64,000 nucleotides of DNA, taken from positions 84,062-148,061 of the forward strand of contig VRVR01000055.1 in assembly GCA_009859145.1 (NCBI GenBank). Direction: 5' to 3'. The position numbers and the translations under genes are program-made. Under the pieces are notes generated by a model. That model did no database searches. It worked only from the letters and a program-made list of their open reading frames with translations, and was not told the DNA's origin. Positions 1 to 50,754 of this stretch are shown here, piece by piece. This DNA is from Andalucia godoyi And28 (Eukaryota > Protista > Jakobida). Every line of letters begins with the position of its first letter. Position 1 is the first letter of the stretch.

Positions 1-360
1 CTGCGACAAATTACCAAGCGACGGCGGAATCGATCCCGTCAACTGGTTAGAATCCAAGTACAAGATCTGAAGCTGCGACAAATTACCAAGCGACGGCGGA
101 ATCGATCCCGTCAACTGGTTGTAATCCAAATACAACTGCTGAAGTTGCGACAGATTACCAAGCGACGGCGGAATCGATCCCGTCAACTGGTTAGAATCCA
201 AGTACAAGATCTGAAGCTGCGACAAATTACCAAGCGACGGCGGAATCGATCCCGTCAACTGGTTGGAATACAAGTACAAGAACTGAAGCTGCGACAGATT
301 GCCGAGGGACGCAGGAATCGATCCCGTCAACTGGTTGGAATCCAAATACAACTGCTGAAG
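1..360 (-). repeat. Tandem array of five near-identical 72-bp units (one 24-aa LRR each)
   Basis: Units start at 1, 73, 145, 217 and 289, with a more diverged sixth at 361. The core cgacggcggaatcgatcccgtcaactggtt is identical in units 1-4 and partly changed in unit 5. Most differences fall in the last ~24 nt of each unit (plus strand). Confidence 0.95.
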
Positions 361-1206
361 GTGCGATAGATTCCCAAGTGAAGCGGAAATTGTGCCAATT
401 AGATTGTTTGAACGTAAATGGATATAAACAATGTTCCCAAGTGAATCACAATTGTATCCGTCAAGCGGAATAGAGCAGCATGCATTGGAAAATTGCAGGG
501 GCAAAGACGGTCCCCAATTGATCGGATACCAGTTCGGACCACCTGTACTCGCATATAGATCAACAAGCACGGCACAGTCTGGTGCATACGAAACAGAGCT
601 GAAAGAACGAACAGAAACACCCAGAGCCAAGCCATCGTCATCGTTCACAGAAAGTAGACTACGAGTTCGACGAGCTTCAGCACGACGAAAACTCAGCTTT
701 TGATGCATTTTCTTTCCAACAAATGGTTGTCCAATCAGGTTCACGGCTGACTCAAGATGGATCGATTGAGCAAACATCGACTTGTGCAAACTGTCATCTG
801 AACGACTCGTCGAAGAATCTTGCTCACTAGGAAACGCACCTTTAGGAATAACGGTCACACCATCCCTTTCCGATCGCTGAAGCCGACTGATTAGCCCGGT
901 AGCAAACCCAAAGATGCTGTCTTCTACCGTTCCAAGCATCGCTGCATCGAAATGCCGTTCCAACTCTTCCCACCAGCTTGCATTTCTCACAGTTGCGAGC
1001 AACATCCACCGTGTCGAATCCGAGGACAAATCCACATGACGTCCAAAGCTATCCCGCAAAAGTTGCTGTTTGAGCGGCAACACAACACTGGGAGGAAGCA
1101 ATCCGATTCTTCCCTCAAAAACAATCTTTGTGGGAGTGCAGCAAACCAGGCAGCAAGTTGATGACAACAGAAACAAGAAAAAAAGACCGAGGGAGGCAGC
1201 GAACAT
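1..1206 (-). CDS. LRR receptor-like protein, paralog 1 (5' part; continues beyond the left edge of the window)
   Basis: Manual translation of the minus strand from ATG at 1206 is open to base 1 (missed by the ORF track because there is no stop). It gives signal peptide MFAASLGLFFLFLLSSTCCLVCC, the motifs GRIGLL, VRNASWW and VEDSIFG shared with the paralogs at 5741 and 15109, the cap APDCAVLVDLYASTGGPNW..ACC..C, then LRRs LQxLYLxxNQLTGSIPxSLGNLSQ. Confidence 0.9.
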   Translation of the reverse strand, partial: MFAASLGLFFLFLLSSTCCLVCCTPTKIVFEGRIGLLPPSVVLPLKQQLLRDSFGRHVDLSSDSTRWMLLATVRNASWWEELERHFDAAMLGTVEDSIFGFATGLISRLQRSERDGVTVIPKGAFPSEQDSSTSRSDDSLHKSMFAQSIHLESAVNLIGQPFVGKKMHQKLSFRRAEARRTRSLLSVNDDDGLALGVSVRSFSSVSYAPDCAVLVDLYASTGGPNWYPINWGPSLPLQFSNACCSIPLDGYNCDSLGNIVYIHLRSNNLIGTISASLGNLSHLQQLYLDSNQLTGSIPASLGNLSQLQFLYLYSNQLTGSIPPSLGNLSQLQILYLDSNQLTGSIPPSLGNLSQLQQLYLDYNQLTGSIPPSLGNLSQLQILYLDSNQLTGSIPPSLGNLSQ

Positions 1207-1377: not shown

Positions 1378-3541
1378 CAGGGACACGCCGGTTAACCTAA
1401 CCGAGCCAAATCCGGTTATTGGTTAACAACCGGTTAACAACCGGTTAAAATCCTGGCATAATGCAATCTGGGCGGAGATAATCGATCCCAGCGACTTGCA
1501 GCATTTTATTTCCATTTCCTCCAATGTTTTTATTTTATTTTTTGATGATGTCAGTATTGTTTCTTTTTCAGCTTTGTCATCTCTTTTGAAACAATTCTTC
1601 CAATGGTTGTTTTGTCTGCTGAAAGAAAGCAAGCTCTGGTTGCGCTTCTCGCTTCTGAGGGGTACAAGACCGTGGAGAATTGCCGTTCATGGGTAGGACC
1701 GTATTTCATGATCGATGCCGATAAAAAGCATGCACGATGCCTCCTCTGCGCGCATGAAGACAAAATTTATCGAATTCGATTCCAGACATCGAATTGTGCA
1801 TATCATCTACAGCACTCTCATGGACTGCCCCTCCCTTCCGAAACGTCGGTTTCCGGTCCTTCGACGGTGTCTAGTTTGCCCTCCCTATTCGAGCGGATGC
1901 GAAAGAACGAAGTGCAGCGAAAGACACTGCTCGCTTTAGCTTTTGCTGAGGGACGCCTTTGTTACAGCATTCTACGTGTACCTTCTGTCAGGAAAGCTTT
2001 TGGCATAAGTGTTTCAGAGCATACTATGAAAAAAGAAATTCGCAAGCTGGCAGCTGAAGTTCGTTCTGAAGTACTTCAACGCATCAAGAACAGTTATGCA
2101 GCTTGTCTCATGTGTGATTCTACACAAGCTGATAATACAACCGGATCTTGGTTGAACTTTTGTGTGGTGTACGGAAAGCAGTCGTTTTTCTTCAAGGGAC
2201 TTCTATGGACAGAATCGCTTACCGGGGATAGAATCTGTGAGCTACTGCGGCAGGTTGTGGAAGAGATTGAAAGTAGTGCTAGAGTTATTGTTGTTTCGTT
2301 TTGCTCGGATAACGGTTCCAATTTTGTTAGCGGCATTGAGGGGTATATAGCGCAGTATCGTCCATGGGCGTTCTTCGTCCGATGTGCTGCGCATTCTATC
2401 CAACTCATTGTGAAAGACGCCATTTCACAACAGCTGCCTGACATAATGCAGCAGATGGCAGCGTCTCTTGCACCCTTTCGGCAACAGCAGGTTCAAAAGA
2501 TGTTTCGAACTGTCCAGGAAATGCAGCCGGCGACGACAGCGCTGAGAATTATTAAACCCGTTGAAGTTCGGTGGAACTCTTTTTACGATGCAGCAAGGCG
2601 TATTCTGGACCGCTGGCCCGCATATGTAAGCGCCGTGAGTGGTACTACTGTTGCTGGTCAGTTTTGTACCGAAACGTGGAAGAATAAGTTGACCGCCTTC
2701 TGCACCGCAATGAAGCCATTTGCTGCTGCCACCGATGCAGTTCAAGCAGATGCTTTCCAGGTGATTTCCTTATGGGACGTTATGTCTAAAGCCGGTAGCG
2801 AAGTGGTAGAGATTGCACGTTCCACGGAAGATTCCTTGACTCGCGAAATCTGCATCGCACTTAAGAATGCATATTGCTCGCGTTGGCATTCAAACTTGAA
2901 TCATTCGCATTTGTCGACTATCCTCACTTTTTTGGATCCTGGAAAGCGGCGGACGCTGAACATCCAACGATTGCAGATGGATTCCCGCTCCAAATTTGTC
3001 AGTTTTTGTCTTGGATTCATTCTTAAGAAAGAGTCCCCATCATCGACTGAAGTTGCCGTTCGTACAACCGCAATATCTTTGCAAATCGAACGCGAGTTGG
3101 GAGATTATACCTTGTCTGCTAATGTATTCTCCCATCTACGTTCTTTCGAAACAGATTTCATTACTTACTGGACCGCTGCTCTTAACCGTGATTTGCTTAT
3201 TGCTGGTGCGGTATTGGCTATGGCTGATATTGCATGCACTCAGGCAGATGTTGAACGTACTTTTTCCGTCGAAGGACAGCTTGTTGATGGAAGACATAAC
3301 ATTTCATTTGAATTGTTGGAATGCGAAATGACGATCCGATTAAATGCACGGCATGTATTGGGGGATGTCATGGAATCCCTGAAGCGGGACACTGCAGAAA
3401 TGAGTTCTTCTTCACTCAGCGGAGACGAAGAGGTACAGGAATAAAACATTATTGAGTTCTCATTACATACATAGGTTTTGGTGATTACAATGACATATCA
3501 GATAAAATAATTACAACAATTGCATATTATAATGATACATA
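1378..3541 (+). mobile_element. hAT-superfamily DNA transposon (left end tentative, right end not found)
   Basis: Contains the hAT transposase ORF. The putative left end CAGGGACACGCC at 1378 is followed by clustered subterminal motifs (ggttaac/accggtt, 11-bp ccggttaacaa repeats, 1389-1447). No matching right TIR or 8-bp TSD was seen. Confidence 0.6.
1603..3444 (+). CDS. hAT transposase with N-terminal BED zinc finger
   Basis: BED-like W..F....ARCLLC...TSNCAYHLQHSH; catalytic-type motifs CDST, SDNGSN, RCAAH (CxxH), RWNS; C-terminal dimerisation motif ACTQADVERTFS. The 613-aa ORF is uninterrupted. Confidence 0.9.
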   Translation: MVVLSAERKQALVALLASEGYKTVENCRSWVGPYFMIDADKKHARCLLCAHEDKIYRIRFQTSNCAYHLQHSHGLPLPSETSVSGPSTVSSLPSLFERMRKNEVQRKTLLALAFAEGRLCYSILRVPSVRKAFGISVSEHTMKKEIRKLAAEVRSEVLQRIKNSYAACLMCDSTQADNTTGSWLNFCVVYGKQSFFFKGLLWTESLTGDRICELLRQVVEEIESSARVIVVSFCSDNGSNFVSGIEGYIAQYRPWAFFVRCAAHSIQLIVKDAISQQLPDIMQQMAASLAPFRQQQVQKMFRTVQEMQPATTALRIIKPVEVRWNSFYDAARRILDRWPAYVSAVSGTTVAGQFCTETWKNKLTAFCTAMKPFAAATDAVQADAFQVISLWDVMSKAGSEVVEIARSTEDSLTREICIALKNAYCSRWHSNLNHSHLSTILTFLDPGKRRTLNIQRLQMDSRSKFVSFCLGFILKKESPSSTEVAVRTTAISLQIERELGDYTLSANVFSHLRSFETDFITYWTAALNRDLLIAGAVLAMADIACTQADVERTFSVEGQLVDGRHNISFELLECEMTIRLNARHVLGDVMESLKRDTAEMSSSSLSGDEEVQE

Positions 3542-3543
3542 TA

Positions 3544-5297
3544 ACCCTTTCCCGGGCCTAGTTGTCCCGCTTGTACGGCAGTCATGAGGCGAGCAAACAG
3601 TCAAATTCAGAAAACCTCTGGTTCTATTTCAGCGAATTCCGGCATTTTCAGTTCTGTTTTTAGCCTCCTTCTCTCCCTCCACATTTTTTTGGGCGCCATA
3701 CAAAACTCCACAGCAATGCTTTCCTTTTCATGCACCCCTTGATGGGGTTGTTTTCCTTTTGTAAAGACGACTGCAGGAATATGGAGACCACCTTGCCAAG
3801 CAATTCCAATGTCCTTCGTGTTTCGGAGGACAACCGTCATCCGGAGAATGATACGCAGATCGTTGCACGTAGAAATGTGTCTCCAAATCGTCCTTCCAAG
3901 TATCGAAAATACACCCTGGAACAGAGACAGAGGGTGTGCGAACTTTATGAAGACGGCGATGATATGACAAAAGTGGACACAATCTTGAATGTCAACCCAA
4001 AGACTGCATCGGAATGGATCCGAAAGTACGAGCACACAGGAGAGTGTGCGCCTCACCAGCGGGGCGGTGCCCGACGATGCATCATTGATGAGCTCATGGG
4101 CAAAGAAATCGAGACATTCTTTGCAGAGCACAGTGCTGCTACTCTCGATCAGTGCGAGGCATATTTGGCGACGAAGTTCTCGGAGACCATTCTCGACTCC
4201 AATGGAAATGCAGTGCGGAAGGAAACCAGACCGATACCAAAGCCCACAACGATCTGTGATTATGTGAACAAGCACGGCCTGTGCTTTAAGATTGCGAAGG
4301 TCATCGTGCCACAACAACAACAACCGGATGACCAATTGATCGAAAAACGAAGAGCGTACGCCGAATGGTTCTGCCACCTTCCACTACGTGCGCAATCACG
4401 AGTTGTGTTTGTTGACGAATTCTACGTGGACTATCGGTTGCATCGCTCAAAGGCTCGGGGTGCCACCGGTGTAAAGCCACGTGTGCTCATCCCAGCCAAA
4501 CAGAACGTGAAGCTGAATATCGTGGCCGCGGTCTCTGCCGATCTCGGTGTTGTTTTGTACAAGACGTACGCGGCACGTGATCTGAAACAGTTCACGAAAG
4601 AGAAACGACGCAAGAATGGTGAAAACAAGGAAAATGAAGAAATTCGCTCTTCAGTGTCCACTGCAGCTGCTGGTGATGATTCTGTGCGAGGAACCACCGG
4701 ACAACTGTTCCAAAGCTATTTGATGGAATTGAAAGCAAAGCTCATGAAGAACGGAGACGATGACCGATTCGTGATTTTCGACAACTACCGGACACATGCA
4801 GACAAATTCACGCTTCCTGCTTTCGAAGGATCGCGTCTGGTGCCGCATTTTCTTCCTCCGTGGTCTCCATTTTTGAATCCAATCGAGAATGTCATCGGAC
4901 ATGTGAAAGGAGTGATACGTACCGCGTGGGCAATGCTGTCTACGAGTATTGAGCAAGTGGCATCTCATGAGTTGCAGCCATATGAAAAACTCGCGCAAGC
5001 AAGAGAGAGAATTCTTCGAGAAATTCTGGATGACGCATTTCATGCAGTATCCGTGGAAGCTGTAAGCTCGTACGCTGAGAAGTCTCGTTCATATTTGCCG
5101 GATTTATTGCAGAAGAAACCAATAACAAACTGGGACTGACACAACCAGTGCCAGCAGCATTTCCAATAAAAAACCTTCGTAACCAGGTGGCTGAAAAGCA
5201 GTCCAACGAGCTGAAGTTGAAAATTGGAAAAACTGTAAATTCAGGACACTTGGCTTGTATGAGCAGAAGATGTCCTGGATGTGGCTCGGGAAAGGGT
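3544..5297 (+). mobile_element. IS630/Tc1-mariner DNA transposon with 15-bp TIRs and TA target duplication
   Basis: Left TIR ACCCTTTCCCGGGCC (3544-3558); right TIR reverse complement ACCCTTTCCCGAGCC (5283-5297), 14/15 match. TA flanks at 3542-3543 and 5298-5299. Confidence 0.88.
3730..5139 (+). CDS. IS630/Tc1-type DD34E transposase
   Basis: N-terminal HTH (YTLEQRQRV...VNPKTASEWIRKY); VFVDE, IFDNYRTH and LPPWSPFLNPIE with 34 residues between D2 and E (counted). The start could be the downstream Met at 3781. Confidence 0.92.
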   Translation: MHPLMGLFSFCKDDCRNMETTLPSNSNVLRVSEDNRHPENDTQIVARRNVSPNRPSKYRKYTLEQRQRVCELYEDGDDMTKVDTILNVNPKTASEWIRKYEHTGECAPHQRGGARRCIIDELMGKEIETFFAEHSAATLDQCEAYLATKFSETILDSNGNAVRKETRPIPKPTTICDYVNKHGLCFKIAKVIVPQQQQPDDQLIEKRRAYAEWFCHLPLRAQSRVVFVDEFYVDYRLHRSKARGATGVKPRVLIPAKQNVKLNIVAAVSADLGVVLYKTYAARDLKQFTKEKRRKNGENKENEEIRSSVSTAAAGDDSVRGTTGQLFQSYLMELKAKLMKNGDDDRFVIFDNYRTHADKFTLPAFEGSRLVPHFLPPWSPFLNPIENVIGHVKGVIRTAWAMLSTSIEQVASHELQPYEKLAQARERILREILDDAFHAVSVEAVSSYAEKSRSYLPDLLQKKPITNWD

Positions 5298-5740
5298 TAG
5301 TGTACTCATGTCGGTGGATGCTCCGAATAGCTGGCAGTATTAATAATTAAACGTTTCGTCTTGTTCTCTTCGGTTTCCTTGTTCGGATCGCACACTCGTA
5401 ACAAGAGAACGCACTCCATGCATCCTTTTCCGAGTATCTTTGTCGAGCCTCACACCGTATTGATTCTCCATGGACGCAATCATGGTGGCAGTACCGTTTC
5501 AGGAATACCAGGTGCGATTGCAGGAAACAATAGGCGGGGAGATGTTTCCGTCCCACACAACCTCGGCATTTTCTGCTCTGGCACACGATGTCATGTGCTG
5601 TCAGCAGCCCATCATCTCTGATCGACACGATGTGCAGCAAGGATCGCTCTCGAGGATTTTGGAAGATGATTTCCGTTTCAATCTCTCTTTCCTTCCTCGT
5701 TGGTCTTCCCCAAAAAGCGAATGTATTCATCCGTGTGCAA

Positions 5741-8700
5741 ATGAAGCAAGCATTGTTGTTTACATTTATTTTGTGCTTGCTTTACGTTCTTGGTCTCGTC
5801 TTTGGACAAAATCGCTCGGCAGCAATTCACAGCTTTCGCGGCAGAATCGGCCTTCTTTCTCCCGCGATCGCAGGCCCTGTCAAGCTCAAAGTTGCCGCTC
5901 AGTTGTCGTGCTCATTGTCCACGGATGCGGAACCAAATGCGTGCATTTTGGCGAGAACGGTCTGGAACTCGTCGTGGTGGGAAGGGGTAGTGCAACTGCT
6001 GGACTCTGCGACCATTCGCTTGGTTGAGGATAGCGTGATTGGACATGTTCACGGATTATTGGACTCAATGGCCACCATGCACAATGTTGCGGTCAACGAT
6101 GGCAATGCTGTGGATGTTCCGAACCACACATTTCCCGAAGTACCAATGGCAACACAATCAACAGCCAAACCAAGGTACAGAGCGAGATCTCGCAGATCGA
6201 CTGCAGCGGGGTATGAAAGTGTCCTTCCAAAGGCTTCACAACGACGGATGGACACAGCAAGTCGGCGGACCCCCTGGAAGGATGTTTCACAGAAATGGAG
6301 AATCAATAACGAGCATCCTCTGCGCAAAAATCGGAAGTTCGAGGTTGTGAGAATGGATGCCAGAGAGCATGTGGCGCTGTCTGCACCATCTTATGAACCG
6401 GATTGCAAAGTGCTGATGGACTTGTACGACTTCACATCTGGCCCTCAGTGGAGTCCTTTCAACTGGGGAAGCCCACTGCCCTCGAATTTTTCCACCGCGT
6501 GCTGTTCGTTGAACCTGGGAGGCATTTTCTGTGAACCTGGAACAGGAAGGGTTCTCGAAATCCTCCTTTCTAGTAATGGGCTTGTGGGAACGATCCCCCC
6601 ATCTCTTGGCAATCTTGCACAACTTGAGGAATTGTGGTTAGACGGAAACTCATTGACTGGGGCTATTCCCTCTTCTCTGGGGAACCTGTCATCGCTTGAA
6701 GTGTTGGTACTGTTTTTGAATCAGCTGACGGGGTCCATTCCGGAATCATTGGGAAACTTGTCGTCGCTTGTAGCCATGGATCTTGATTCGAATTCATTAA
6801 CGGGAGAGATCCCGAATTCGATAGGAAAACTTGTCAAACTCACTTTTCTTGCTTTGTTTTCGAATCAGTTGACTGGGCGCATCCCGTCCAGCCTTGGAAA
6901 CTTGAAAGGCCTCCAGAGCCTGCAGTTAGCGGAAAACCGATTGACAGGATCCATTCCGAATTGGATCGGGGGTCTTCTAAACTTACAGGACCTACGATTC
7001 GAGGCAAACGATTTGAGTGGTTCTATCCCCGATTCCCTGGGCAATTTGTCTGAGCTGCAAGTGCTGGTTTTGGTGGGTAACAGATTCACCGGTCCGATTC
7101 CAGCATCTTTAGGAAGCCTGTCTTCTTTGAAAACATTAGAATTGTGTCCGAACGGACTGACCGGATCCATTCCTTCTACGTTTTCGCGATTAACAGCACT
7201 CCAGCGTTTGCAGTTTGATTCCTGTGGCTTGACGGGGCAGGTGCCAGATTTGTTTCGTTCGATGTCAGATCTTGAGCTACTGACACTTTCTACGAACAAT
7301 TTCGAAGGCAAGCTTCCCGATTCATTGCAATTTCTTCAAGACTTGCGATACTTGGATGTTAGCGCCAACAATTTCGACGGTCCCATTCCGTCGTTCATCG
7401 GCCAGCTCGGCCAATTGCAGACCTTGGACCTTCATGGAAACAAGTTTAGTGGTCCTATTCCTGTTTCCATCGGGAATCTATCTCAGTTACATTATCTTGA
7501 TTTGCACTCGAATCACTTCGAATCCGCGATTCCGGACATTATTGGGTCGCTCTCTCAGCTACTAACATTGGATTTGTCGTCAAACAACCTGGTAGGTACC
7601 ATTCCGAGCAGTATTGGAAGCCTGACTCTGCTTACTTCGCTGAGCTTGCATGCAAACCTGTTACAGGGTTTTCTTCCGGATTCGCTGGGAAATCTTGCGG
7701 ATTTGCAGTTTCTTGATCTCAGTGTGAACAATATTTCTGGTTCGTTTTCGTGCTTCAGCTTGCCTCCGAACATTCAGTCTCTGAACTTGCAGAACAACCA
7801 ATTGTTTGGAGCCATTCCCCAATGCATTTGTAATGTGCAGTCATTGAGTTTTTTGTATTTGGGAGTCAACCATTTCTCTGCGTTTCCTGATTGCTCGACA
7901 CCTTCACTTTCGTTGCTGGATTTGTCGAGCAACAACATTTCATTCTTCCCATTTGATCGAATTGTCGAATTCCAGTCGCTGAAATCGCTCGATCTTAGCA
8001 ACAATGTCCTTCATGGCAAGTTTCCATTGAATGTCTTTCTTGGAGGATTGCGGCTTTCGTCGCTCTCTCTTGCTTACAATAATTATGAGGATGCTTTACC
8101 CATATATGGGTGCAGTTTCTGGAATGGAGATCAAGTCATGACTGTCAATGGTTCCACCGGTCTGGAAGTTGTGGACCTTTCTGGGAACACAATTACGGGC
8201 ATTCCTGGGTTGTACGACGTCACCACAGGAAAACCCTGTGGATTCCCGGGGTATCCTTCGCTGTCAGTACTCTCCCTACAACACGTGGCTGCACCTTCTC
8301 TGTTTCCTGGTTCGGTTGTGAATCTGGCCGGTTCTCAAGGTTTCTTTCCTTACCCTTCGTTCTCGCTCTTGGACATATCTCGTATTGCTCCTGGCTTGGT
8401 CTCTGTTGATGTTTCGCACAACGATTTGGATGCACACCTCGACTATGCGCTGTCCTTGCCTTTGCTGGTCGCGCTGGATTTGTCACACAATCGGATCGCT
8501 CGATTGTCGAGTCTTCCTGAAGCAGACAAAAGGCGGTTTTCGTACGATCCGACGACGTTCTATGCATATAGTGTACAGATGACTTGTCTTCAAGCGCTAG
8601 TGGATGGTGACACACAATTCCAGGCAGATCCGTCCTTCTTCGACTATGAGAATTGTGTGTGTCGATTGGGGTACTTTGGGAAACCGCCGAACTGTTCGAC

Positions 8701-10108
8701 GTGTCCCGAAAATGCGGATTGTTCCCTGACGTTTGACAGGGACTCACAGTTCCTGGATATGGAGAAGGCATACATGTCCAGCGGCAACATCGTTGCGCAA
8801 CCGGGCTTCTACGCATCGCCACCTGTGACCTACAAGGAGATGGCAAACAACCAGGCGTACCCCACTGCGATTGAGATTTGCGATCAGGCAGGCACTCCGT
8901 TGACCCCGTGCCAGGCCGATACCAGTCGGAGGTGCATTTCTGGGTATGAAGGCAGACTGTGCGCACGGTGCACTTCCGGTTACTTTCGTGCTGGCGATCG
9001 ATGTCACGAATGTCCGGATGATATTGTCATCTATGGAATCGTTTTGGTCATTGTCGCCATCTGCATCGTTGCGTGGGCGTTCTTCGTTGGCCCTTCATCC
9101 TCCGGTGCTGTCAAGATTCTCGTCTTCTTCTGGCAATCGTTTCTGTTCATTCGAGCTCCGATGCCCACCAATCTGTATCTGTTCACTCACAATACGTCGT
9201 CTTCGACAACGCTGAGCTTTGCGGGACCTGAGTGCGTGTTTGCAAACTGGGGATACCGTGCGCAGTACATCTTCTCCGTCGTTGCGCCCTTTGGTGCCTT
9301 GGCGATCGTGGGACTCATTTGGGTTCTTGGTCGCATATGTGGAGTGCCTCCGTCGCAACGGACTGCGTGGCTGGATCGATGCCGCCGAGCAGGCATCTTC
9401 TTGTTCTTGCTGTTGTACATGCCCGCCGTGTCTGCGGTCTTTGCACCTCTGTCATGCACAAAGGATCCTGGGAATGGAGAACGGTACATCCAGTTCAATC
9501 CAGCAGAACGCTGCTCATCCGCTCTTCAGGCGAACTCGTGGGTGCTGCTGCTGGTGTACTGCTTTGGCGTGCCCGGGTTCTTTGGCTACCGATTGTGGAA
9601 GACAAGGGTTCTGTGGTCCAGTTCTGGCAGTGACCCGCGAGCTCGTTATGTGTACGGGATACTGGTTGGATCGTTTCGGGAGGGACGTTTGTGGTGGGAA
9701 TTTGTTGTCACCATGCGCCGCATCGTTCTGGTTGCTGCGTACGTGTTGATCCCTCGATTGTCGGAGTATCTCACCCTGCTTGTGGTGCTCTTGTTTGTTT
9801 CGGCGTCGGGCGCGCAGGCAGTTGCTGTTCCGTACGGACGGAGCATTGACAACTGGGCCGAGATCGTGTCGCTCGGGCTTCTGCTGGTGAACTTGGTTTG
9901 CTCGGTCCAGTCACAGGTGCTTGGCGTATATGATGTCGATGACGCGGGTACGCTCGTCTTTGTGCTGAACATCTTGTTTTCTGCAACCCTCGTAGCGATG
10001 CTTCTTCACACGTGGCTGCGCAAGTTTCAAAGATTCCGTCAGCGAATCAGCGGCAAGTCGAACCTGGCAGCCTCCCTCTTAAACGACGAATCCGCCGAGT
10101 CTTTGTAA
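5741..10108 (+). CDS. LRR receptor-like multi-pass membrane protein, paralog 2
   Basis: The likely start is ATG 5741 (signal peptide MKQALLFTFILCLLYVLGLVFG), inside the 5588 ORF. About 17 plant-type 24-aa LRRs plus about 5 capping LRRs, a Cys-rich stalk (CVCRLGYFGKPPNCSTCP; GYEGRLCARC) and about 8-9 hydrophobic segments (KILVFFWQ; YG.L..SFR..R.WWE.V...RR). No kinase domain. Confidence 0.92.
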   Translation: MKQALLFTFILCLLYVLGLVFGQNRSAAIHSFRGRIGLLSPAIAGPVKLKVAAQLSCSLSTDAEPNACILARTVWNSSWWEGVVQLLDSATIRLVEDSVIGHVHGLLDSMATMHNVAVNDGNAVDVPNHTFPEVPMATQSTAKPRYRARSRRSTAAGYESVLPKASQRRMDTASRRTPWKDVSQKWRINNEHPLRKNRKFEVVRMDAREHVALSAPSYEPDCKVLMDLYDFTSGPQWSPFNWGSPLPSNFSTACCSLNLGGIFCEPGTGRVLEILLSSNGLVGTIPPSLGNLAQLEELWLDGNSLTGAIPSSLGNLSSLEVLVLFLNQLTGSIPESLGNLSSLVAMDLDSNSLTGEIPNSIGKLVKLTFLALFSNQLTGRIPSSLGNLKGLQSLQLAENRLTGSIPNWIGGLLNLQDLRFEANDLSGSIPDSLGNLSELQVLVLVGNRFTGPIPASLGSLSSLKTLELCPNGLTGSIPSTFSRLTALQRLQFDSCGLTGQVPDLFRSMSDLELLTLSTNNFEGKLPDSLQFLQDLRYLDVSANNFDGPIPSFIGQLGQLQTLDLHGNKFSGPIPVSIGNLSQLHYLDLHSNHFESAIPDIIGSLSQLLTLDLSSNNLVGTIPSSIGSLTLLTSLSLHANLLQGFLPDSLGNLADLQFLDLSVNNISGSFSCFSLPPNIQSLNLQNNQLFGAIPQCICNVQSLSFLYLGVNHFSAFPDCSTPSLSLLDLSSNNISFFPFDRIVEFQSLKSLDLSNNVLHGKFPLNVFLGGLRLSSLSLAYNNYEDALPIYGCSFWNGDQVMTVNGSTGLEVVDLSGNTITGIPGLYDVTTGKPCGFPGYPSLSVLSLQHVAAPSLFPGSVVNLAGSQGFFPYPSFSLLDISRIAPGLVSVDVSHNDLDAHLDYALSLPLLVALDLSHNRIARLSSLPEADKRRFSYDPTTFYAYSVQMTCLQALVDGDTQFQADPSFFDYENCVCRLGYFGKPPNCSTCPENADCSLTFDRDSQFLDMEKAYMSSGNIVAQPGFYASPPVTYKEMANNQAYPTAIEICDQAGTPLTPCQADTSRRCISGYEGRLCARCTSGYFRAGDRCHECPDDIVIYGIVLVIVAICIVAWAFFVGPSSSGAVKILVFFWQSFLFIRAPMPTNLYLFTHNTSSSTTLSFAGPECVFANWGYRAQYIFSVVAPFGALAIVGLIWVLGRICGVPPSQRTAWLDRCRRAGIFLFLLLYMPAVSAVFAPLSCTKDPGNGERYIQFNPAERCSSALQANSWVLLLVYCFGVPGFFGYRLWKTRVLWSSSGSDPRARYVYGILVGSFREGRLWWEFVVTMRRIVLVAAYVLIPRLSEYLTLLVVLLFVSASGAQAVAVPYGRSIDNWAEIVSLGLLLVNLVCSVQSQVLGVYDVDDAGTLVFVLNILFSATLVAMLLHTWLRKFQRFRQRISGKSNLAASLLNDESAESL

Positions 10109-10486: not shown

Positions 10487-13400
10487 TCAAAGTTCGGCAT
10501 CATCCGTCTGCAGCAATCGTTCCTGGAGGTTATCCAGCGATATCTGCCTATCTCGCTGTCGCCACCGAGCGGCAAATTGGAACAAGAGCATGCTAACAAT
10601 GGACAACGAAAACGCAACATTCAGCAGAAATACAATTGTACCGGCCCCAACAACATCTTGCACACCAAGGACTTGCGATTGAACGGAGCAGACCAGATTC
10701 ACAAGAAGCAGTCCCAGAGACGTGATCTCCACGGCGTTTTCGAGATTTCGACGATAGGGAGAGGCGACAGACTGCAAAATCGCCGCTATCACCAAAACGC
10801 CTGCGACCAGCATCGTGCGATGTTCGGACAATCGCGGAATCGTCACGTACGCGACCACGAAGAGGATACGACGAATGGTGATCACCAACTCCCACCACCT
10901 TCGGTTATCCTTGTAGGACCCAAAGAGAAGGGAATAGACGTACATCCGTCTCGTGTCTGGTTTCACATTCTTTGACAGAACGCCGCTTCGCCACACAAAG
11001 AAGGACAGAGAACCCGGAACAAGGATCGCATAGATCAAGAGAACACCCGAAGACACTGCTTGCATCAACGGTAAACACTGTTGGTCGGGATAGAACAGCA
11101 TGTACTTCTTTCCGTCCCCGGGATCCGTTGCGCAAGATAATGGAGCGAGAACGGTAGAGATTGCAGACATGAACAGAAAAACGTAAAGGAAAATGGCAGA
11201 ACGCCGACATCGGTCAATCCACAATTTCCATGCTGATCTTGGCAGTCTTCTGATAAAGATCCAGGCCATTCCAAACATCCACAGAAGACCAACAATCAGA
11301 ACAGCAAAGATGGGGGCAGTCACCGTGAACGTGTAATTCGTGTAGTAATCCCAATGTTTGAAAAAGCATTCTGGTCCAGCAACGCTCAGCATAGATGTGG
11401 TCGAAACGCTGTTGGAGAAAACATACAAGGACTGCGACATGGGGGCGCGAATGAAGAACAGAGCTTGCCAAAAGAACACAATAACTTTGACAAGGCCAGA
11501 AGACGAGGAACCAACAAAGAATGACCACAACAGTAAAGAAAGAGCGACAAGAAAAACGACAGCTGCAAAAATGATGAGACCTTCGGAACTCGGACATTCG
11601 ATGCATCTCTCACCGGCCCGAAAATTTCCAGGTGAACAGCCTGCGCATAATCTCCCCTCGTATCCTGCTTTGCATGGTCGATCTTGCGTTGCCTGGCAGG
11701 GTGTCAGATCGGTACCGGACTGTGCACAGATTTCAATGGACTTTGGATACGATTCGTTATTCATCATTTGGAGCCAGGTAACCGGAGGCGAAGCGTAGTA
11801 CCCAGGGTCGGCAAGGACGTTTCCGCTCTGCGCATACGCCAACGACATGTTTCCAAAAGGAATTTGCGCTTCATCTTGAAACGAGCATTCTGCATTGGCC
11901 ATGCATCTCTGGCAATTTGGTGGTTTGCCGTAATATCCCGATCGGCATACACAATTCTCGTAATCAAAGAAAGATGGATCGGCTTGAAAAATAAGATAAT
12001 GGTCGACAACAGATTGTAAGCAGGTCATATTCGTGCTATACGGATAGCTTGTCGACGGAACAAATGAGAACCGTTGCTGGTTGGTAATAGAAAGCATCCA
12101 TCTTCGAGCATGAGGATTGCTCCGGACGTCGAATTCCGACAACAGAGAAAGCGATAGCACGAAATCCAAATGCACAGATAGATCATTCGAGGAAACATCC
12201 AACGACACGAGACCGGGCAGGTACGGGAGGAAATCGAAAAAAGACAGTGGTGGAAAATTACAAAAAACATTCACAAGACCGTAAGGAGAATACGCAAAAC
12301 TCGGAAAGGTCGCACCAAAGGAGACGTTTTCAAGCTTCAAATCGGTCAAGGAGGGGTATCCCAATCCGACGCACATTTCACAATTCCTTGTGGAGTAGTC
12401 CACGACACCCGGCAGCCCAAGAATAACATTTCCAGAAAGATCGAGCGATTCAAGTCCTGAAATGCCATTGACAAGAACAATAGTATGGGTCTCATCAGGT
12501 ACCAAGTAATTGCAAGCGAAGATGGGAAATTCATCGACGAAGCTGTTGAAGGCAAGAGACAATGATCGAAGAGGAAGTCCGCCAAGGAAAACGTTGACAG
12601 GAAAAAGACTGCCTAGATGGTTATGACTCAAATCTAGCGAAGTCATTGACGAAAAGCTGGAAATCAGATCGAAAGGAAAGGAGGAGATTTGATTGTTCGA
12701 TAAATCCATCTGAATCACCGACGGAAGAGAACAATTCGGAAAGGATTGAAACATGTTGCTGCCCATATACACGAAAGTGAGATCACGCTGGGTGCAGAAG
12801 CAGTCCGGGATTGCTCCGGAAAGACCATTTCCTTGGAAATTCAATGAGGTAAGACTGGACCCAATCGAGTCGCATGAAATGGGTCCAGATAGTTGATTAT
12901 AGCTCAAATCCACAGACTGCAGTTTCGACAATTTCCCCAGAGAATCAGGAATCGGACCGGAGAGTTGATTGCTATGCAGATCCAAATAGAGCAAGTTCGA
13001 CAGACCACCGATTGTCGAAACAATTGGGCCGGAAAGCTGATTGGAGTTCAAATACAGTGTCTTCAATCGAGAATTCTTGTTCAGTGATGCCGGTAGTGTA
13101 CCATTCAACAAGTTGGACGATAAGTCCAAGTACTCAAGACGGGATAAATCACTCAAAGTGGACGGAAGGGGACCACTCAATTGATTGGATGACAAATCCA
13201 GATGCACAAGAGCAGAAAGCGAGCCCAAGGAAGAAGGAACTGAACCAGACAACTGGTTGGAATACAATTGCAATTCTTCAAGCAGCCTCAGATTTCCCAG
13301 TGATTCCGGAATAGTTCCGTTCAACAGATTAGAAGAGAGATCCATTGCAAGAAGCTGTGAAAGCATACCGAGTGATTCTGGTATGTCTCCAATAAGACGA

Positions 13401-15109
13401 TTCGAAGAAAGATACAGAGAAACCAATTGCGACAATAGGCGCAGGGAATTCGGAATTGATCCAGTTAATTGGTTTGCAGAAAGATCCAGTGTGTGAAGCT
13501 GTGATAAATTTCCAAGAGATTCGGGAATCTCGTCACTGAATTGATTCGACGACAGCGATAACAGCGTAAGTTGGCGTAAGCAACCAAGGGAATCCTGTAT
13601 CCGTCCACAGAGTTGATTGGAAGACAGGTCTACAAGCGTGAGTTTGAGCAAATTACCAAGCGATGAAGGAAGCTGTCCAGTCAGTTGATTCCGATGCAGA
13701 TACAGTTCTGTGAGATTCAACAAATTTCCGAGAGAGTGTGGAATCTCACCAGTCATATGATTGTCATACAGAGCAAGTATCTCAAGATGTGTTAGATTGC
13801 CTAATGATGCTGGAATTGGTCCAGTGAGATGATTGGCAAAGGCAATCAAAACACGAAGCTTGGAAAGCATTCCAAACGTCTCAGGAATGGATCCGGAAAA
13901 TTGATTAACGTATAATTCCAACACTTCGAGTTTGGACAAGCGACCCAGAGACGCTGGGATCTGACCAGTAAGTTGATTCCTTTGGAGCGAAAGTTCAACA
14001 AGCAAAGTTAAGTTGCTGATTGACGCGGGAATCTCTCCTGAAAGTTCATTTGAAGAAAGATCCAGCTGCAAAAGACGTGAAAGGTTACCCAGAGATGCTG
14101 GAACTGATCCACTGAACTGATTATCATGCAATAGCAGACTCGTGAGCTGCACCAGATTTCCGAGTGACACGGGAATCGATCCGTTCAAAAGGTTTGAATT
14201 CAACTCCAACTCTGACAAGTGGGACAGTTTTCCTAGAAAAACCGGAATAGGACCAGTAAAATTATTGAATGACAACACCAGCTTTCGAAGCTTCGACAAC
14301 AGTCCTAACGAAACAGGGATTCCTCCATGCAAGTTGTTATTCTGCAACTGGATATCGCGAAGATCCTCCAGTTGACTCAGTGACTCTGGAAGGGACCCGT
14401 CCAGCTGATTGGCGCTTAAATCAAGGCTCGTAATCCTTCCTGAAGCACTGTCACACGTAAATCCACCAAGACCCAGCGAGCAGCAATCTTTCGAAAAGTC
14501 CGAAGGCAACGGGTCGCCCCAGAACAACGGTCGCCAAGTGCGGCCACTGGTATTCGTATACAAATCAACGAGTACAGCACAGTCTGGCGCGTGAGAGACG
14601 GCATCGAACGAACGCGCTGGAGCTGACTGTACCGACTTTGAAAGTAGTCTCACAACGTTGTTTCTCATGTCGACAGAATGGACGAAACGTTGTGAACCAA
14701 CAGATTCCGATGCTGATTTGAGATAGGAATCAAAACCACTCGTCTTTGACGATTTCACAGAATATTGGGTGTTTGAAGAAGATTTCTCGTTCAGCGGAAT
14801 GGACAAATGATCAATCAATCCGAAAACGTGACCAAAGACACTATCTTCAAACAATTCAAAGGTTGCGGAGTTCAACTGCAACTGAAAAGCAGACCACCAG
14901 GTGATATTTCGAATGGTAGAATCAAGCACCGAACCAACAGAAACCGAGGGCGACGACGCATAGACCGGCGGCCCACCAAACACTTTCGTTTTAAGCGGTT
15001 TCAAAACATCTTGAGGAAGCAGTCCGATTCTTCCCGAGTACACTGGACCACACGCAACAAATTTGAACAAAACAAAGGCAAACACAACCAAGACTGATAG
15101 ACGCAGCAT
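10487..15109 (-). CDS. LRR receptor-like multi-pass membrane protein, paralog 3
   Basis: Same architecture as 5741..10108 and convergent with it. About 22 array LRRs plus about 5 capping LRRs. Shares the blocks FQADPSFFDYENCVCR, GYEGRLC and LLLVNLVCSVQSQVLGV. Confidence 0.93.
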   Translation of the reverse strand: MLRLSVLVVFAFVLFKFVACGPVYSGRIGLLPQDVLKPLKTKVFGGPPVYASSPSVSVGSVLDSTIRNITWWSAFQLQLNSATFELFEDSVFGHVFGLIDHLSIPLNEKSSSNTQYSVKSSKTSGFDSYLKSASESVGSQRFVHSVDMRNNVVRLLSKSVQSAPARSFDAVSHAPDCAVLVDLYTNTSGRTWRPLFWGDPLPSDFSKDCCSLGLGGFTCDSASGRITSLDLSANQLDGSLPESLSQLEDLRDIQLQNNNLHGGIPVSLGLLSKLRKLVLSFNNFTGPIPVFLGKLSHLSELELNSNLLNGSIPVSLGNLVQLTSLLLHDNQFSGSVPASLGNLSRLLQLDLSSNELSGEIPASISNLTLLVELSLQRNQLTGQIPASLGRLSKLEVLELYVNQFSGSIPETFGMLSKLRVLIAFANHLTGPIPASLGNLTHLEILALYDNHMTGEIPHSLGNLLNLTELYLHRNQLTGQLPSSLGNLLKLTLVDLSSNQLCGRIQDSLGCLRQLTLLSLSSNQFSDEIPESLGNLSQLHTLDLSANQLTGSIPNSLRLLSQLVSLYLSSNRLIGDIPESLGMLSQLLAMDLSSNLLNGTIPESLGNLRLLEELQLYSNQLSGSVPSSLGSLSALVHLDLSSNQLSGPLPSTLSDLSRLEYLDLSSNLLNGTLPASLNKNSRLKTLYLNSNQLSGPIVSTIGGLSNLLYLDLHSNQLSGPIPDSLGKLSKLQSVDLSYNQLSGPISCDSIGSSLTSLNFQGNGLSGAIPDCFCTQRDLTFVYMGSNMFQSFPNCSLPSVIQMDLSNNQISSFPFDLISSFSSMTSLDLSHNHLGSLFPVNVFLGGLPLRSLSLAFNSFVDEFPIFACNYLVPDETHTIVLVNGISGLESLDLSGNVILGLPGVVDYSTRNCEMCVGLGYPSLTDLKLENVSFGATFPSFAYSPYGLVNVFCNFPPLSFFDFLPYLPGLVSLDVSSNDLSVHLDFVLSLSLLSEFDVRSNPHARRWMLSITNQQRFSFVPSTSYPYSTNMTCLQSVVDHYLIFQADPSFFDYENCVCRSGYYGKPPNCQRCMANAECSFQDEAQIPFGNMSLAYAQSGNVLADPGYYASPPVTWLQMMNNESYPKSIEICAQSGTDLTPCQATQDRPCKAGYEGRLCAGCSPGNFRAGERCIECPSSEGLIIFAAVVFLVALSLLLWSFFVGSSSSGLVKVIVFFWQALFFIRAPMSQSLYVFSNSVSTTSMLSVAGPECFFKHWDYYTNYTFTVTAPIFAVLIVGLLWMFGMAWIFIRRLPRSAWKLWIDRCRRSAIFLYVFLFMSAISTVLAPLSCATDPGDGKKYMLFYPDQQCLPLMQAVSSGVLLIYAILVPGSLSFFVWRSGVLSKNVKPDTRRMYVYSLLFGSYKDNRRWWELVITIRRILFVVAYVTIPRLSEHRTMLVAGVLVIAAILQSVASPYRRNLENAVEITSLGLLLVNLVCSVQSQVLGVQDVVGAGTIVFLLNVAFSLSIVSMLLFQFAARWRQRDRQISLDNLQERLLQTDDAEL

Positions 15110-15779: not shown

Positions 15780-18323
15780 TCGTAAAGGCACCTATTCTTG
15801 CCAGTTTTTTCGCACTTGTCATGCCGGGTCATTGTCGGGTCATTCCAATTGGAAACCACCCAATTTTTAGTGCAAATTCGTGTTCTCCGCAGTCAAATGC
15901 ATGTGTTTCGTTTTCAAAAAGGTTCTTCTGATAATGCTCACTACACTGTTATTAGTGCCGCAAAATGGCCAAAATTTAATTAAGCGGCGGGTATTCTTGC
16001 CGGGTTTTCCGATAAAAATGTTTTGGCGTGCTTTCTTCTTTCTTCCTTTCTTTTTTCACCAAAATCAATCAGAATGGTCAAAACACGATCCCGCATCGAA
16101 AGAACCGCAAATTCGGATGCGCAGCTCACGAAGGACGTCCTCGCGCATATCATCAATGGCGCTAAATACCAAGATCTGCAGTCAGCTGGACGTACCGTGC
16201 GCAAATACGTGGGTATCTATTACGACGTGATCATTGATGAGCTCAACGACTGCGCACGAAGTGCGTTCGCGGAAACTCCTGGTGGGCAGCTTCAAACGTT
16301 TCATCCGGTCGTGCCAACGGAAGCGGAAAGGCGGCGCTCGACGATCCCTGAAGCTCTTTACCAGTTCATCGAAATGGATCATCTCGAAGAAGTCGTTTCC
16401 TTCTTTGGGAAGGCAGGACGGCCTGCTGCGCTGTGTCCGGACGAAGAGAAGCGGCTGTATCACTACGCAGTGTACAGAGTGCAGCGGAATATGCCCCTTC
16501 TGAAGCAGGATTTCCTCCGAATGGTGTCCAAGTACCTGAGCGATACCGGAAGAACAAGAACAATCACACTAACACGGAAGAGAGAGTGTTCTTCTGGACA
16601 CGGCGTCAAATCGAAAGAATCCAGAACGATGTTGTCGAAGAACTGGCTTCCCGCATTCAATCGCCGGATGGAAAAGCAAGGGTTGACGTCGCTAGTTCTC
16701 CGCCTACCCTCAACACTCGAACGATCCCGCGAGTACGCATTCAACAAGGAGAACGTCGATGAATTCTTTGGGGATCTGGAAACGGCGTACGCACGAGCAG
16801 GAATCACAAGCCCGGCAGATGCGTGGCGAGTGATCAACATGGACGAGACCGGTGTCCAAGGGGACCAGGAGTCCAAGCTGCGTGTTCTCGCTCCCAGAGG
16901 CACAAAGCGAGTGCAGATGGCAATCAACTCGGAGAGAAACCACGTGACGATGATCAATGCGATCTCTGCCGCTGGAACAGCATTCCGACCGATGATGGTG
17001 TATTCAAACACAGGACCGTCGTTGGACTACATGCAGGAGGTGCTCCTGAAGAAGGATCCGGAACTGAAAATCTGTCGAAGCGAGAAGGGATGGATAGACT
17101 CCACTCTCTTTGTGGAATTCTTGGAGGACCTCAAATCCCAGCTGCCCGCTGAGCGTCGCGACGCAAAAATCATTCTGATCGTGGACGGACACAGCAGCCA
17201 TACGACGATGGAAGCTGTGGAGTGGTGCTGCGCAAACAACTGGGAGTTGGTCACGTTTCCTGCGCACTGCACCCACAAAATGCAGCCTCTGGACGTCGAG
17301 TGCTACAAGACTGTCAAAAACGCATTCCGTTATGAGAAACAGCGAATGGGAGAGCAAGGGATTGATGTTGGGAAGCATGTGTTGTTGCAGGATGGCTCAG
17401 TATTCCGTCTAACGAAGGGAGGCGACGTCAACACCCATTGCCTGTTGAATGCGTGGAAGAACGTCTCTCCTATGCATGTCGAGCGTGCGTTTCAGGTCAC
17501 GGGGCTGTTCCCGCTTCGGAAGAACACGTTTGAAGCAGAGTTTGCGAAAGCAGAGCAAGCTGCTCAACAGGCTGTTGAAATGCGGTTTTTGGACAGCGGA
17601 TGCACCACTGCAGGACCGCATTCATCCAACACCGCATCTGAACGCCCCGAGGATGATGATACGGATGACGATGACGACCATAACGACGACGATGATGATG
17701 ATGACGATGCAGAGGGCCGCAAAAGAGCCGCAGTAGCTGTACAGAAACAGAGGCAGCGGCGCAACCGTCAACGAGGAGTCTTGTCAGCGAGCGCAGGCAA
17801 GGCATTGAAAAAGCCTCGAGGAAAGACGACAAGCTTCTGCCTGACTGCTCAGGAAGCAGTTGCTTTCATGCGAAACAAAGTTGCAGACGAGAATCAACGC
17901 AGAACCGAGAAGGAGGCGAAAGCACAGAAACGCCAACAGTCAGCAACGCGAAACTCGAGCGTTTCGACTGTTTCTCGTCCGCCAAACGCCATCCATATCC
18001 GTTCCTACAATGGCGGTGAGGGCAGCAGCACCTCGCCCTATGTTCCCGCTTCACAACAGCCAGCTGCAGAGGCAGCAGGCACCGTTGGCATACAGCCCAC
18101 TGGGCTGCTGTCGTCCATCCAAGCAGCAAACCGACGATTTGCCCAAAACTAACTGTTGCCACTCTCCAGGTGAGCCATTTGAGATGTAATTATTGTTCTC
18201 CACTCGAAACTGAATCCATTTATCTCGTTAATATTTTGAAAACATGAAAAATAATGAAAAATACGTGAGAAAAAATAAAAGCGAAAAACTGGGGGGAAAT
18301 GGCAAGGTTACGTTTTTTTACAA
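15780..18323 (+). mobile_element. pogo/Fot1-like DNA transposon, copy 1
   Basis: TA at 15778-15779 and 18324-18325. Imperfect 26-bp termini TCGTAAAGGCACCTATTCTTGCCAGT vs TTGTAAAAAAACGTAACCTTGCCATT (18/26 by my count), similar to the TIRs of copy 2. Confidence 0.7.
16074..18152 (+). CDS. pogo/Fot1-like DDE_1 transposase (DD35D) with HTH-CENPB-like region and acidic tract
   Basis: NMDETG, IVDGHSSH and FPAHCTHKMQPLDV with 35 residues between D2 and D3 (counted); Asp-rich tract and basic C-terminus. The first in-frame ATG is at 16074. Confidence 0.92.
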   Translation: MVKTRSRIERTANSDAQLTKDVLAHIINGAKYQDLQSAGRTVRKYVGIYYDVIIDELNDCARSAFAETPGGQLQTFHPVVPTEAERRRSTIPEALYQFIEMDHLEEVVSFFGKAGRPAALCPDEEKRLYHYAVYRVQRNMPLLKQDFLRMVSKYLSDTGRTRTITLTRKRECSSGHGVKSKESRTMLSKNWLPAFNRRMEKQGLTSLVLRLPSTLERSREYAFNKENVDEFFGDLETAYARAGITSPADAWRVINMDETGVQGDQESKLRVLAPRGTKRVQMAINSERNHVTMINAISAAGTAFRPMMVYSNTGPSLDYMQEVLLKKDPELKICRSEKGWIDSTLFVEFLEDLKSQLPAERRDAKIILIVDGHSSHTTMEAVEWCCANNWELVTFPAHCTHKMQPLDVECYKTVKNAFRYEKQRMGEQGIDVGKHVLLQDGSVFRLTKGGDVNTHCLLNAWKNVSPMHVERAFQVTGLFPLRKNTFEAEFAKAEQAAQQAVEMRFLDSGCTTAGPHSSNTASERPEDDDTDDDDDHNDDDDDDDDAEGRKRAAVAVQKQRQRRNRQRGVLSASAGKALKKPRGKTTSFCLTAQEAVAFMRNKVADENQRRTEKEAKAQKRQQSATRNSSVSTVSRPPNAIHIRSYNGGEGSSTSPYVPASQQPAAEAAGTVGIQPTGLLSSIQAANRRFAQN

Positions 18324-49900: not shown

Positions 49901-50754
49901 ACGAAGTCGGCAAGATCCTCGAATTTCCGATGTCCACGTCTGGAATGCAGCGAATGGGATTCCTTACGTACAGCGATCGTGCAATAAGCGGAATGTCGGA
50001 TGCAGGGAAGTGCAGCCCGTAATACGAAGTGGTAACTGCATCGCGCTTCCATTCGCAAATAACATCTCCAGACTCGTCAGAAACGTCGAATTCATAAACC
50101 ATGCAGCGGTCGCATCCAAGGAATTCAAAGACCTGCGTTCCCACGACTGCACAAACATCATGCAGTGATTTGCAACAAGACATACGTTCGTTCATGGTGG
50201 TGATGCCACGTCTGTACATTTCCACATATTGAAGAGAGTTCGAGGGCCACGAAGATGCAACACGATGCGCAGGACGCGCGACCTCGGCACAGTCCAGTTC
50301 CAGAACTAGAGTACCTTTTGTCATAAAAGTAAAAGCAGGAAAGTGCTTCAGTGTAACGTTGCCGCGTTGCTCCTCTGCAACACATCCTCGATTCTGATTC
50401 ACGTATTCGACAAGCGGACCAGGTTCATTGATGTACACAGAAATAGGACCAAACCTCGAAGTTTCGCCAGCGAAACGCAAGGGTTTTGGAGTACAACAAG
50501 TTCAGTTCCTTGGTGAGACCCCCATCAAAGATTTCCACAGAATCGATTAGAACCGATAGAGGCTGATTGAGAAGTCCGTCGGCTGAAAAACCAAGGTGAT
50601 CCTTCACATTGTCGGAGATGTTCAAGATGAACGGGGGCTGCGAATCAGAATTGTTGGCATTGAATGATATACCAATGAGGACCCCATAGTTGAGCACAAG
50701 CCCAGAAAAAGGCAGTGGCTCCTTCTCACAAGAGTCTATGAACAGCTTTTGCAT
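46989..50754 (-). CDS. Phytochrome hybrid histidine kinase (PAS-GAF-PHY-HisKA-HATPase-degenerate REC-REC), biliverdin/N-terminal-Cys type
   Basis: ORF 50425..50754 gives SCEKEP..G/PAS2. ORF 46989..50480 gives GAF (MVYEF, HFPASDIP, LRSVSSVHIQYL, LWGLVSCHH), PHY (WLGNP..PKESF), H-box SHQMRTP, N-box GNAVKYT, G boxes and REC (EDNPLN, LMDCFMP, GKP). A phase-0 61-nt GT-AG intron at 50454-50394, or one extra C near 50481, joins the two ORFs. Confidence 0.93.

Follow-up and report, generated by a model that had tools for sequence, protein, structure and literature searches.

The window analysed here, a 64,000-nucleotide stretch of Andalucia godoyi DNA, opens with an array of leucine-rich repeat (LRR) units that are nearly identical at the DNA level. 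The locus raises the question of whether such an array belongs to a system that actively reshuffles a selected binding surface or is the product of ordinary tandem duplication. A sequence-only reading of the window had favored the former and likened the array to the LRR shuffling of lampreys and brown algae. We consider the latter probable: the array appears to be a fairly young tandem LRR amplification that arose through ordinary slippage or unequal crossover and then drifted under the constraint of the scaffold.

A receptor-like gene at the edge of the window

The gene that carries the array (paralog 1; two relatives in the window are paralogs 2 and 3) occupies positions 1-1206 of the minus strand as an open frame of 402 codons, which starts from an ATG at 1206 and leaves the window at position 1 (Table 1). 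It encodes six LRRs in one continuous ORF with no introns. The N-terminal region that follows the signal-peptide-like segment, about 180 residues long, has no Pfam match and gave a low-confidence AF2 model. The cap is common to paralogs 2 and 3 and to A. godoyi family members by alignment, and the Foldseek matches of the cap in paralog 1 were plant LRR ectodomains, caps included. Between the first LRR and the other units, 30-33 of 72 nt differ, and the array that follows this LRR matches Pfam LRR_1 and LRR_8.

Table 1. Features of the 64-kb window, listed with position, strand and the basis or content of each assignment.
Feature	Position	Strand	Basis or content
Paralog 1, signal-peptide-like hydrophobic N-terminus and start codon	1135..1206	-	ORF, hydrophobicity
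Paralog 1, family-specific N-terminal region (GRIGLLP..NASWWEE..VEDSIFGF)	592..1134	-	alignment
Paralog 1, LRR N-terminal cap with conserved Cys (PDCAVLVDLY..GPNW..CCS..C)	433..591	-	alignment, Foldseek
Paralog 1, first LRR, diverged (IVYIHLRSNNLIGTISASLGNLSH)	361..432	-	translation, unit comparison
Paralog 1, five near-identical 72-nt (24-aa) plant-specific-type LRR units, cut by window edge	1..360	-	
Unit U1	360-289	-	strand LQQLYLDS, A later in the unit
Unit U2	288-217	-	strand LQFLYLYS
Unit U3	216-145	-	strand LQILYLDS
Unit U4	144-73	-	strand LQQLYLDY
Unit U5	72-1	-	strand LQILYLDS
hAT-like DUF659 transposon ORF	1603-3444		Pfam
Tc1/mariner DDE_3 transposon ORF	3730-5139		Pfam
Paralog 2	5741..10108	+	signal peptide, N-domain, cap, LRRs, Cys-rich EGF-like part, ~8 hydrophobic helices
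Paralog 2, membrane domain, C-terminal ~430 aa	8780-10108	+	
Paralog 3	10487..15109	-	architecture as paralog 2; 22 regular diverged LRRs
Paralog 3, membrane domain, C-terminal ~430 aa	10487-11800	-	
Two pogo-like DDE_1 transposon ORFs	16023-18152, 33044-34360		Pfam
1282-aa ORF	27405-31253	+	11 Ephrin_rec_like repeats, NCD3G and TNFR-like Cys-rich modules
Tandem adenylate/guanylate cyclase genes, 1794 and 1800 aa	34839-40223, 41127-46529	+	
Phytochrome-type GAF-PHY-HisKA-HATPase-REC gene, adjoining cyclases	46989-50480	-	

The array has a 24-residue period with the pattern LxxLxLxxNxLxGxIPxxLxxLxx, by which LRRs of the plant-specific type are recognized. The best solved relatives of its LRRs were the ectodomains of FLS2, GSO1 and PEPR1, with 4mn8 matched at E = 1e-163. 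In the AF2 model, pLDDT was above 90 across the LRRs. Both the model and the Foldseek matches gave a solenoid with a parallel β-sheet on its concave face, and the top 50 Foldseek matches were all plant LRR domains, nearly all of them from receptor or co-receptor ectodomains. Since the strands are predicted at unit positions 3-7, positions 3 and 7 lie in the concave strand; in the model, position 8 would fall just past that strand, and the convex helix would begin at position 17. A homology search with the whole fragment was dominated by generic LRR proteins. Many bacterial and metagenomic proteins (P0034, P0039, P0045 and P0002 among them) share the consensus NQLTGSIPPELGNLS and are 60-70% identical to the jakobid units; the "plant-specific" LRR class is far from restricted to plants.

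Paralog 1 is best explained as the 5′ part of a gene whose product is an LRR receptor-like protein, either secreted or located in the membrane. By analogy with paralogs 2 and 3, its 3′ part probably carries an EGF-like region and a multi-pass membrane domain, and the ectodomain may bind an extracellular ligand through its concave face. Continuation of paralog 1 beyond the window edge found no match in metagenome contigs, either in a protein-guided scan or in an exact 39-nt scan, and exact-product look-ups with five window ORFs and two ANDGO models also returned no match. Over positions 1-360, frame 1 of the plus strand is open as well (LRQITKRRRNRSRQLVRIQVQDLK per unit). This antisense frame was rejected as a gene and is attributed to the repeat itself. 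An 11-nt direct repeat, GGTTAACAACC, is present in 2.5 copies at 1421-1448, within the 400 nt that separate the start codon of paralog 1 from the hAT-like ORF.

A family with a multi-pass membrane domain

The N-domain motifs (GRIGLLP/N-x-SWW) and the Cys cap are common to the three paralogs and to ANDGO models, and paralog 1 has the full N-terminal signature of the family, namely the signal peptide, the N-domain with these motifs and the cap. The family comprises at least 15 A. godoyi members, the three window genes included, in a 20-Mb genome. The EukProt relatives that were found all came from Andalucia godoyi EP00762, and the closest named relatives were A. godoyi models together with a few metagenomic or Logan proteins. 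Paralog 2 (5741-10105) is 100% identical to a protein represented only in EukProt, and the C-terminal part of paralog 3 has 87% identity to ANDGO_07458. EukProt annotates family members with names such as [quoted passage not shown] and "MDIS1-interacting receptor like kinase 2". Members have from 3 to 22 regular 24-aa LRRs each; paralogs 2 and 3 have 16 and 22 diverged ones, respectively, alongside irregular LRRs.

Downstream of the LRRs, the EGF-like part of paralogs 2 and 3 is Cys-rich with weak DUF7630/EGF_laminin matches and is followed by ~8-9 hydrophobic helices that form a multi-pass membrane domain. This domain had no Pfam match in either paralog, and a PDB profile search gave a chance-level match only. 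In P0130, a metagenomic relative with 23% identity, the membrane part passes the Pfam threshold of PF06011 TRP. A profile search with the C-terminal domain retrieved 72 cluster representatives at E ≤ 1e-30 and 6290 at E ≤ 0.001, so the domain is widespread yet poorly described. The family thus joins a plant-type LRR ectodomain to a multi-pass membrane domain, a combination for which no description was found in the literature searched. The genome paper (PMC7050145) and a full-text search for DDB_G0281931 yielded no discussion of the LRR/EGF-like/multi-pass family of A. godoyi. The family may be of interest for studies of prey or environment sensing in free-living protists.

The gene at the window edge could also be a decaying fragment or pseudogene beside transposons, devoid of a functional 3′ half. 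DNA-transposon ORFs indeed lie 0.4-4 kb away. A homology search with the N-domain returned a single match, ANDGO_04709 (P0121), a 160-aa A. godoyi model that matches the N-domain core of paralog 1 (NASWWEELER..VEDSIFGFATGL) and then follows a shifted frame of the gene at 592-1134. This closely similar model looks frameshifted, which may be true of the paralog itself or stem from an error in sequencing or in gene modelling. Neither that search nor the 50 best family representatives contained a full-length model of paralog 1. Yet paralog 1 has 402 codons free of stops, its signal peptide and cap are intact and its LRR framework is strongly constrained (pN/pS of 0.05), which makes decay highly improbable. 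Several other ANDGO family models begin inside or after the LRR region.

Five near-identical units

Tandem Repeats Finder (TRF) reported a 72-nt period at positions 1-378 with 5.2 copies, 88% matches and a score of 581. The units, numbered U1 to U5 in protein order, each consist of a strand segment followed by NQLTGSIP[A/P]SLGNLSQ. TRF and translation agree exactly with the five 72-nt units, the near-invariant framework and the strand strings that the sequence-only reading had described. Pairwise nucleotide identity among U1-U5 is 84.7-97.2%, with a mean of 90.3%; only 14 of the 72 nucleotide positions vary, and amino-acid variation is confined to unit positions 3, 7, 8 and 17. The regular LRR units of paralogs 2 and 3, in contrast, have nucleotide identities of just 46% and 50%, so the array is much younger than theirs, as had been proposed. 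The term "recent" is nevertheless relative here, given a mean pS of 0.23 between units.

Among the family members sampled, paralog 1 is the only one with many near-identical units: it has 10 unit pairs that are identical at 20 or more of 24 residues, whereas the other members have at most one. Paralogs 2 and 3 contain no near-identical units. The LQQLYL and LQILYL strand variants also adjoin in the family member ANDGO_04360, and the difference between them may therefore predate the amplification.

Variation and selection among the units

The differences among units cluster in nt 7-24, which encode the β-strand. We compared codon classes by Nei-Gojobori estimates over all pairs of U1-U5. The concave codons (2, 3, 5, 7 and 8) had a pN/pS of 0.35 (pS 0.59, pN 0.21), the other 19 codons, which make up the framework, 0.05 (pS 0.17, pN 0.01) and all codons together 0.24 (pS 0.23, pN 0.055). 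Constraint is strong in the framework and relaxed in the concave-face codons. The contrast between the two classes gave a Fisher p of ~0.1 when counted as events, which are few (~5 nonsynonymous and 8-9 synonymous). Synonymous differences are likewise enriched in the strand codons.

These values bear on the proposal that the concave face carries the variation and that its variable positions are under diversifying selection. The first part holds in that the differences cluster there and the framework is the more constrained class. Three of the four variable residues are on the concave face, which gives p = 0.018 against all 24 positions of the unit but only p = 0.15 when compared with the 12 freely varying positions of paralogs 2 and 3. 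The second part finds no support, as pN/pS is above 1 in no codon class. Furthermore, the same combination of fixed framework and variable strand was found in 8 unrelated LRR proteins, chosen as high-scoring database matches outside the family. Mean entropy in these proteins reached 2.0-2.7 bits at the concave positions, compared with 0.5-1.6 bits at the remaining non-core positions and ~0-0.3 bits at the core. The pattern is generic for consensus-like arrays of the plant-specific-type LRR class.

The strand patch nonetheless bears on a reading in which the array is under active, selected diversification, with ongoing unequal crossover or short-tract conversion shuffling strand variants and positive selection keeping concave residues. 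Outside a patch at codons 3 and 5 that is shared by U1 and U4, the nonsynonymous changes among the four youngest units are I3F, D7Y and S8Y; all three are concave and two are independent changes to Tyr. The standing of paralog 1 as the sole sampled family member with many near-identical units would fit such a process as well. On the other hand, the concave pN/pS remains at 0.35 with synonymous changes enriched in the same codons, the events are few, the level of pS between units does not suggest ongoing homogenisation, and the LQQLYL/LQILYL pair recurs in ANDGO_04360. Together with the recombination tests described below, these results make selected diversification unlikely.

How the array was built

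That the array was built by unit duplication is borne out most clearly by its longest exact repeat, which spans 112 nt at an offset of 144 nt (positions 10-121 equal 154-265). This offset indicates that the last event copied a block of two units. The blocks at 1-144 and 145-288 differ at 8 positions, 6 of which fall within 17 nt (122-138) in the strand-coding patch of U4 and U2 (scan p = 0.0012). Four of these six constitute the CAG..TAT versus ATC/TTC..TAC patch, in a state common to U4 and U1. The remaining two each create a private Tyr, through D7Y in U2 and S8Y in U4. This clustering exceeds what simple duplication and drift predict. It includes a whole-codon difference, CAG versus ATC, and leaves room for short-tract conversion or selection.

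The informative sites 7, 8, 9 and 15 separate {U1,U4} from {U2,U3,U5}, and site 24 groups {U3,U5}. In the four-gamete test only one site, the synonymous nt 64, was incompatible, and the tree ((U1,U4),(U2,(U3,U5))) fits all informative sites but that one. U1 carries five private changes within nt 48-60, while its 5′ half matches U4, with a max-chi2 p of 0.06 against U4. These private changes and the clustered block differences make short-tract exchange possible without demonstrating it. The 5′ patch of U4 resembles that of U1 while its 3′ part is the same as in U2, as shuffling would produce, yet the failure of only a single site in the four-gamete test speaks against shuffling. The sequence-only reading had described its unit 5, counted from the window edge, as a mosaic. 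The strings it quoted are indeed shared with its unit 2, and "ttggaa" with its unit 4, but the sites fit a duplication tree and a mosaic origin is not needed. The "ttggaa" string is the consensus TCC-AAC state at a third codon position, found in three of the five units, and is thus no recombination marker. Neither the selection and four-gamete tests nor the search for donor cassettes (see below) lends support to active reshuffling of a selected binding surface.

The length of the exact repeat is also relevant to whether the array is an artefact of assembly or polishing, in which the unit number, unit order or some of the variant sites would stem from Newbler or from correction with Illumina reads that lack a unique placement, with the contig perhaps even ending inside the repeats. 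The published assembly was built from 454 reads with Newbler, corrected with 94-bp Illumina reads and comprises 66 scaffolds with 150 gaps (PMC7050145). Because a 94-bp read does not reach across the 112-nt repeat, mis-correction of single variant sites is conceivable. Moreover, the array reaches the window edge and a number of ANDGO family models break off at or close to their LRR regions. GS FLX+ reads, however, extend over several hundred nucleotides and would span several 72-nt units. The units are distinguishable, with 2-11 nt differences per pair, and no exact full-unit duplicates of the kind expected from a graph loop are present. The reading frame is intact across all units and the framework codons carry a coherent signature of selection. 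An artefact seems very unlikely in view of these features.

We therefore return to tandem amplification and drift as the probable history. LRR units would have multiplied in tandem through unequal crossing-over or replication slippage, and the most recent event would have copied the 144-nt two-unit block. The register of the duplication would keep the reading frame. The framework residues (L, N, G, IP and LGNL) would then have been held by strong purifying selection, leaving the exposed β-strand positions 3, 7 and 8 free to change after duplication. The array is real but reflects ordinary evolution for such genes, with no special diversity-generating system. It provides a jakobid example of a known rule, according to which tandem duplication of units in frame enlarges LRR receptor genes, scaffold residues are kept and exposed strand residues drift. 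The array alone opens no new question.

Comparison with known repeat systems

The variable lymphocyte receptors (VLRs) of lampreys and hagfish arise by somatic assembly, in which donor cassettes that flank an incomplete germline gene are inserted into it. Paralog 1 resembles them in its 24-residue LRR modules and in having its diversity on the concave face. An nhmmer search of the 64-kb window with the unit profile, however, found no donor LRR cassettes outside the three intact genes, and VLR-like cassette assembly was accordingly rejected.

The protist LRR genes of Ectocarpus (ROCO; PMC3341825) and Tetrahymena (PMC6564038) are similar to paralog 1 in that their unit number has been changed by recombination between units, and the Ectocarpus ROCO unit is also 72 nt (24 aa) long. 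In both of these systems each LRR is its own exon between introns, whereas the units of paralog 1 are contiguous in one ORF, and the LRR class of paralog 1 differs from theirs. The ROCO proteins of Ectocarpus are cytoplasmic GTPases (PMC3341825), and the proteins of the 90-bp LRR exon arrays in Tetrahymena are mostly without membrane domains (PMC6564038). Exon-per-repeat shuffling of the ROCO type was rejected for paralog 1 as the ORF is uninterrupted through six LRRs. With neither cassettes nor introns, there is no sign of the lamprey VLR-like or brown-alga-like shuffling to which the array had been compared. Amplification of LRR or other recognition repeats within a gene by unequal crossover is itself documented, in Tetrahymena (PMC6564038), Ectocarpus (PMC3341825) and the WD repeats of Podospora (PMC1805685).

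Plant receptor ectodomains such as those of FLS2, PEPR1, GSO1, MIK2 and PGIP share with paralog 1 the 24-residue LxxLxLxxNxLTGxIPxxLGxLxx repeat, the Cys N-cap and secretion, and the variable residues of paralog 1 lie on the concave strand as in plant LRR ectodomains. Unlike plant LRR receptor kinases, paralogs 2 and 3 have neither a kinase domain (no Pkinase match in either) nor a single-pass anchor; they have an EGF-like region and ~8-9 membrane helices instead. The host organism, a jakobid, sets the family apart from plant LRR receptors as well.

If it were actively diversifying, the array would be expected to behave like the highly internally conserved (HIC) repeats of fungal NLRs, as in the WD40 repeats of het-d and het-e in Podospora (PMC1805685). 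Like these, the paralog 1 units are tandem and very similar at the DNA level (HIC repeats being recognized by units of at least ~85% DNA identity within a gene, against 84.7-97.2% here), they have few variable positions on the interaction surface, and the repeat number varies within the family. They differ in fold, LRR as opposed to WD40. Positive selection, exchange between loci and polymorphism among strains have been demonstrated for het-d and het-e (PMC1805685), whereas in paralog 1 omega is not above 1 and no inter-locus exchange was seen. The strongest version of this comparison is that paralog 1 is a jakobid HIC LRR array, still exchanging two-unit blocks and undergoing 17-nt conversion of the strand patch, with a unit number and order that vary between Andalucia isolates. 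We regard it as quite unlikely. If true, it would equip a bacterivorous flagellate with a fast-evolving recognition surface, a Discoba LRR counterpart of the fungal NLRs with HIC repeats.

Other genes in the window

The window is eukaryotic and intron-poor with long uninterrupted ORFs, and few A. godoyi genes have introns (PMC7050145). A bacterial origin was rejected in view of the eukaryotic transposases and of the EukProt protein identical to paralog 2, and the window very probably derives from the A. godoyi nuclear genome. Two of its four transposon elements separate paralog 1 from paralog 2. On either side of the DDE_3 ORF there is a candidate 17-nt terminal inverted repeat (3542-3558 and 5283-5299). 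Recently amplified repeats also occur in another receptor-like gene of the window, the 1282-aa ORF: one tandem array in it lies at 27540-28454 with a period of 147/294 and 72-73% matches, and another at 28632-29062 with a period of 111 nt, 3.9 copies and 84% matches. With the cyclase and phytochrome-type genes included, the window groups together genes for sensing and signalling.
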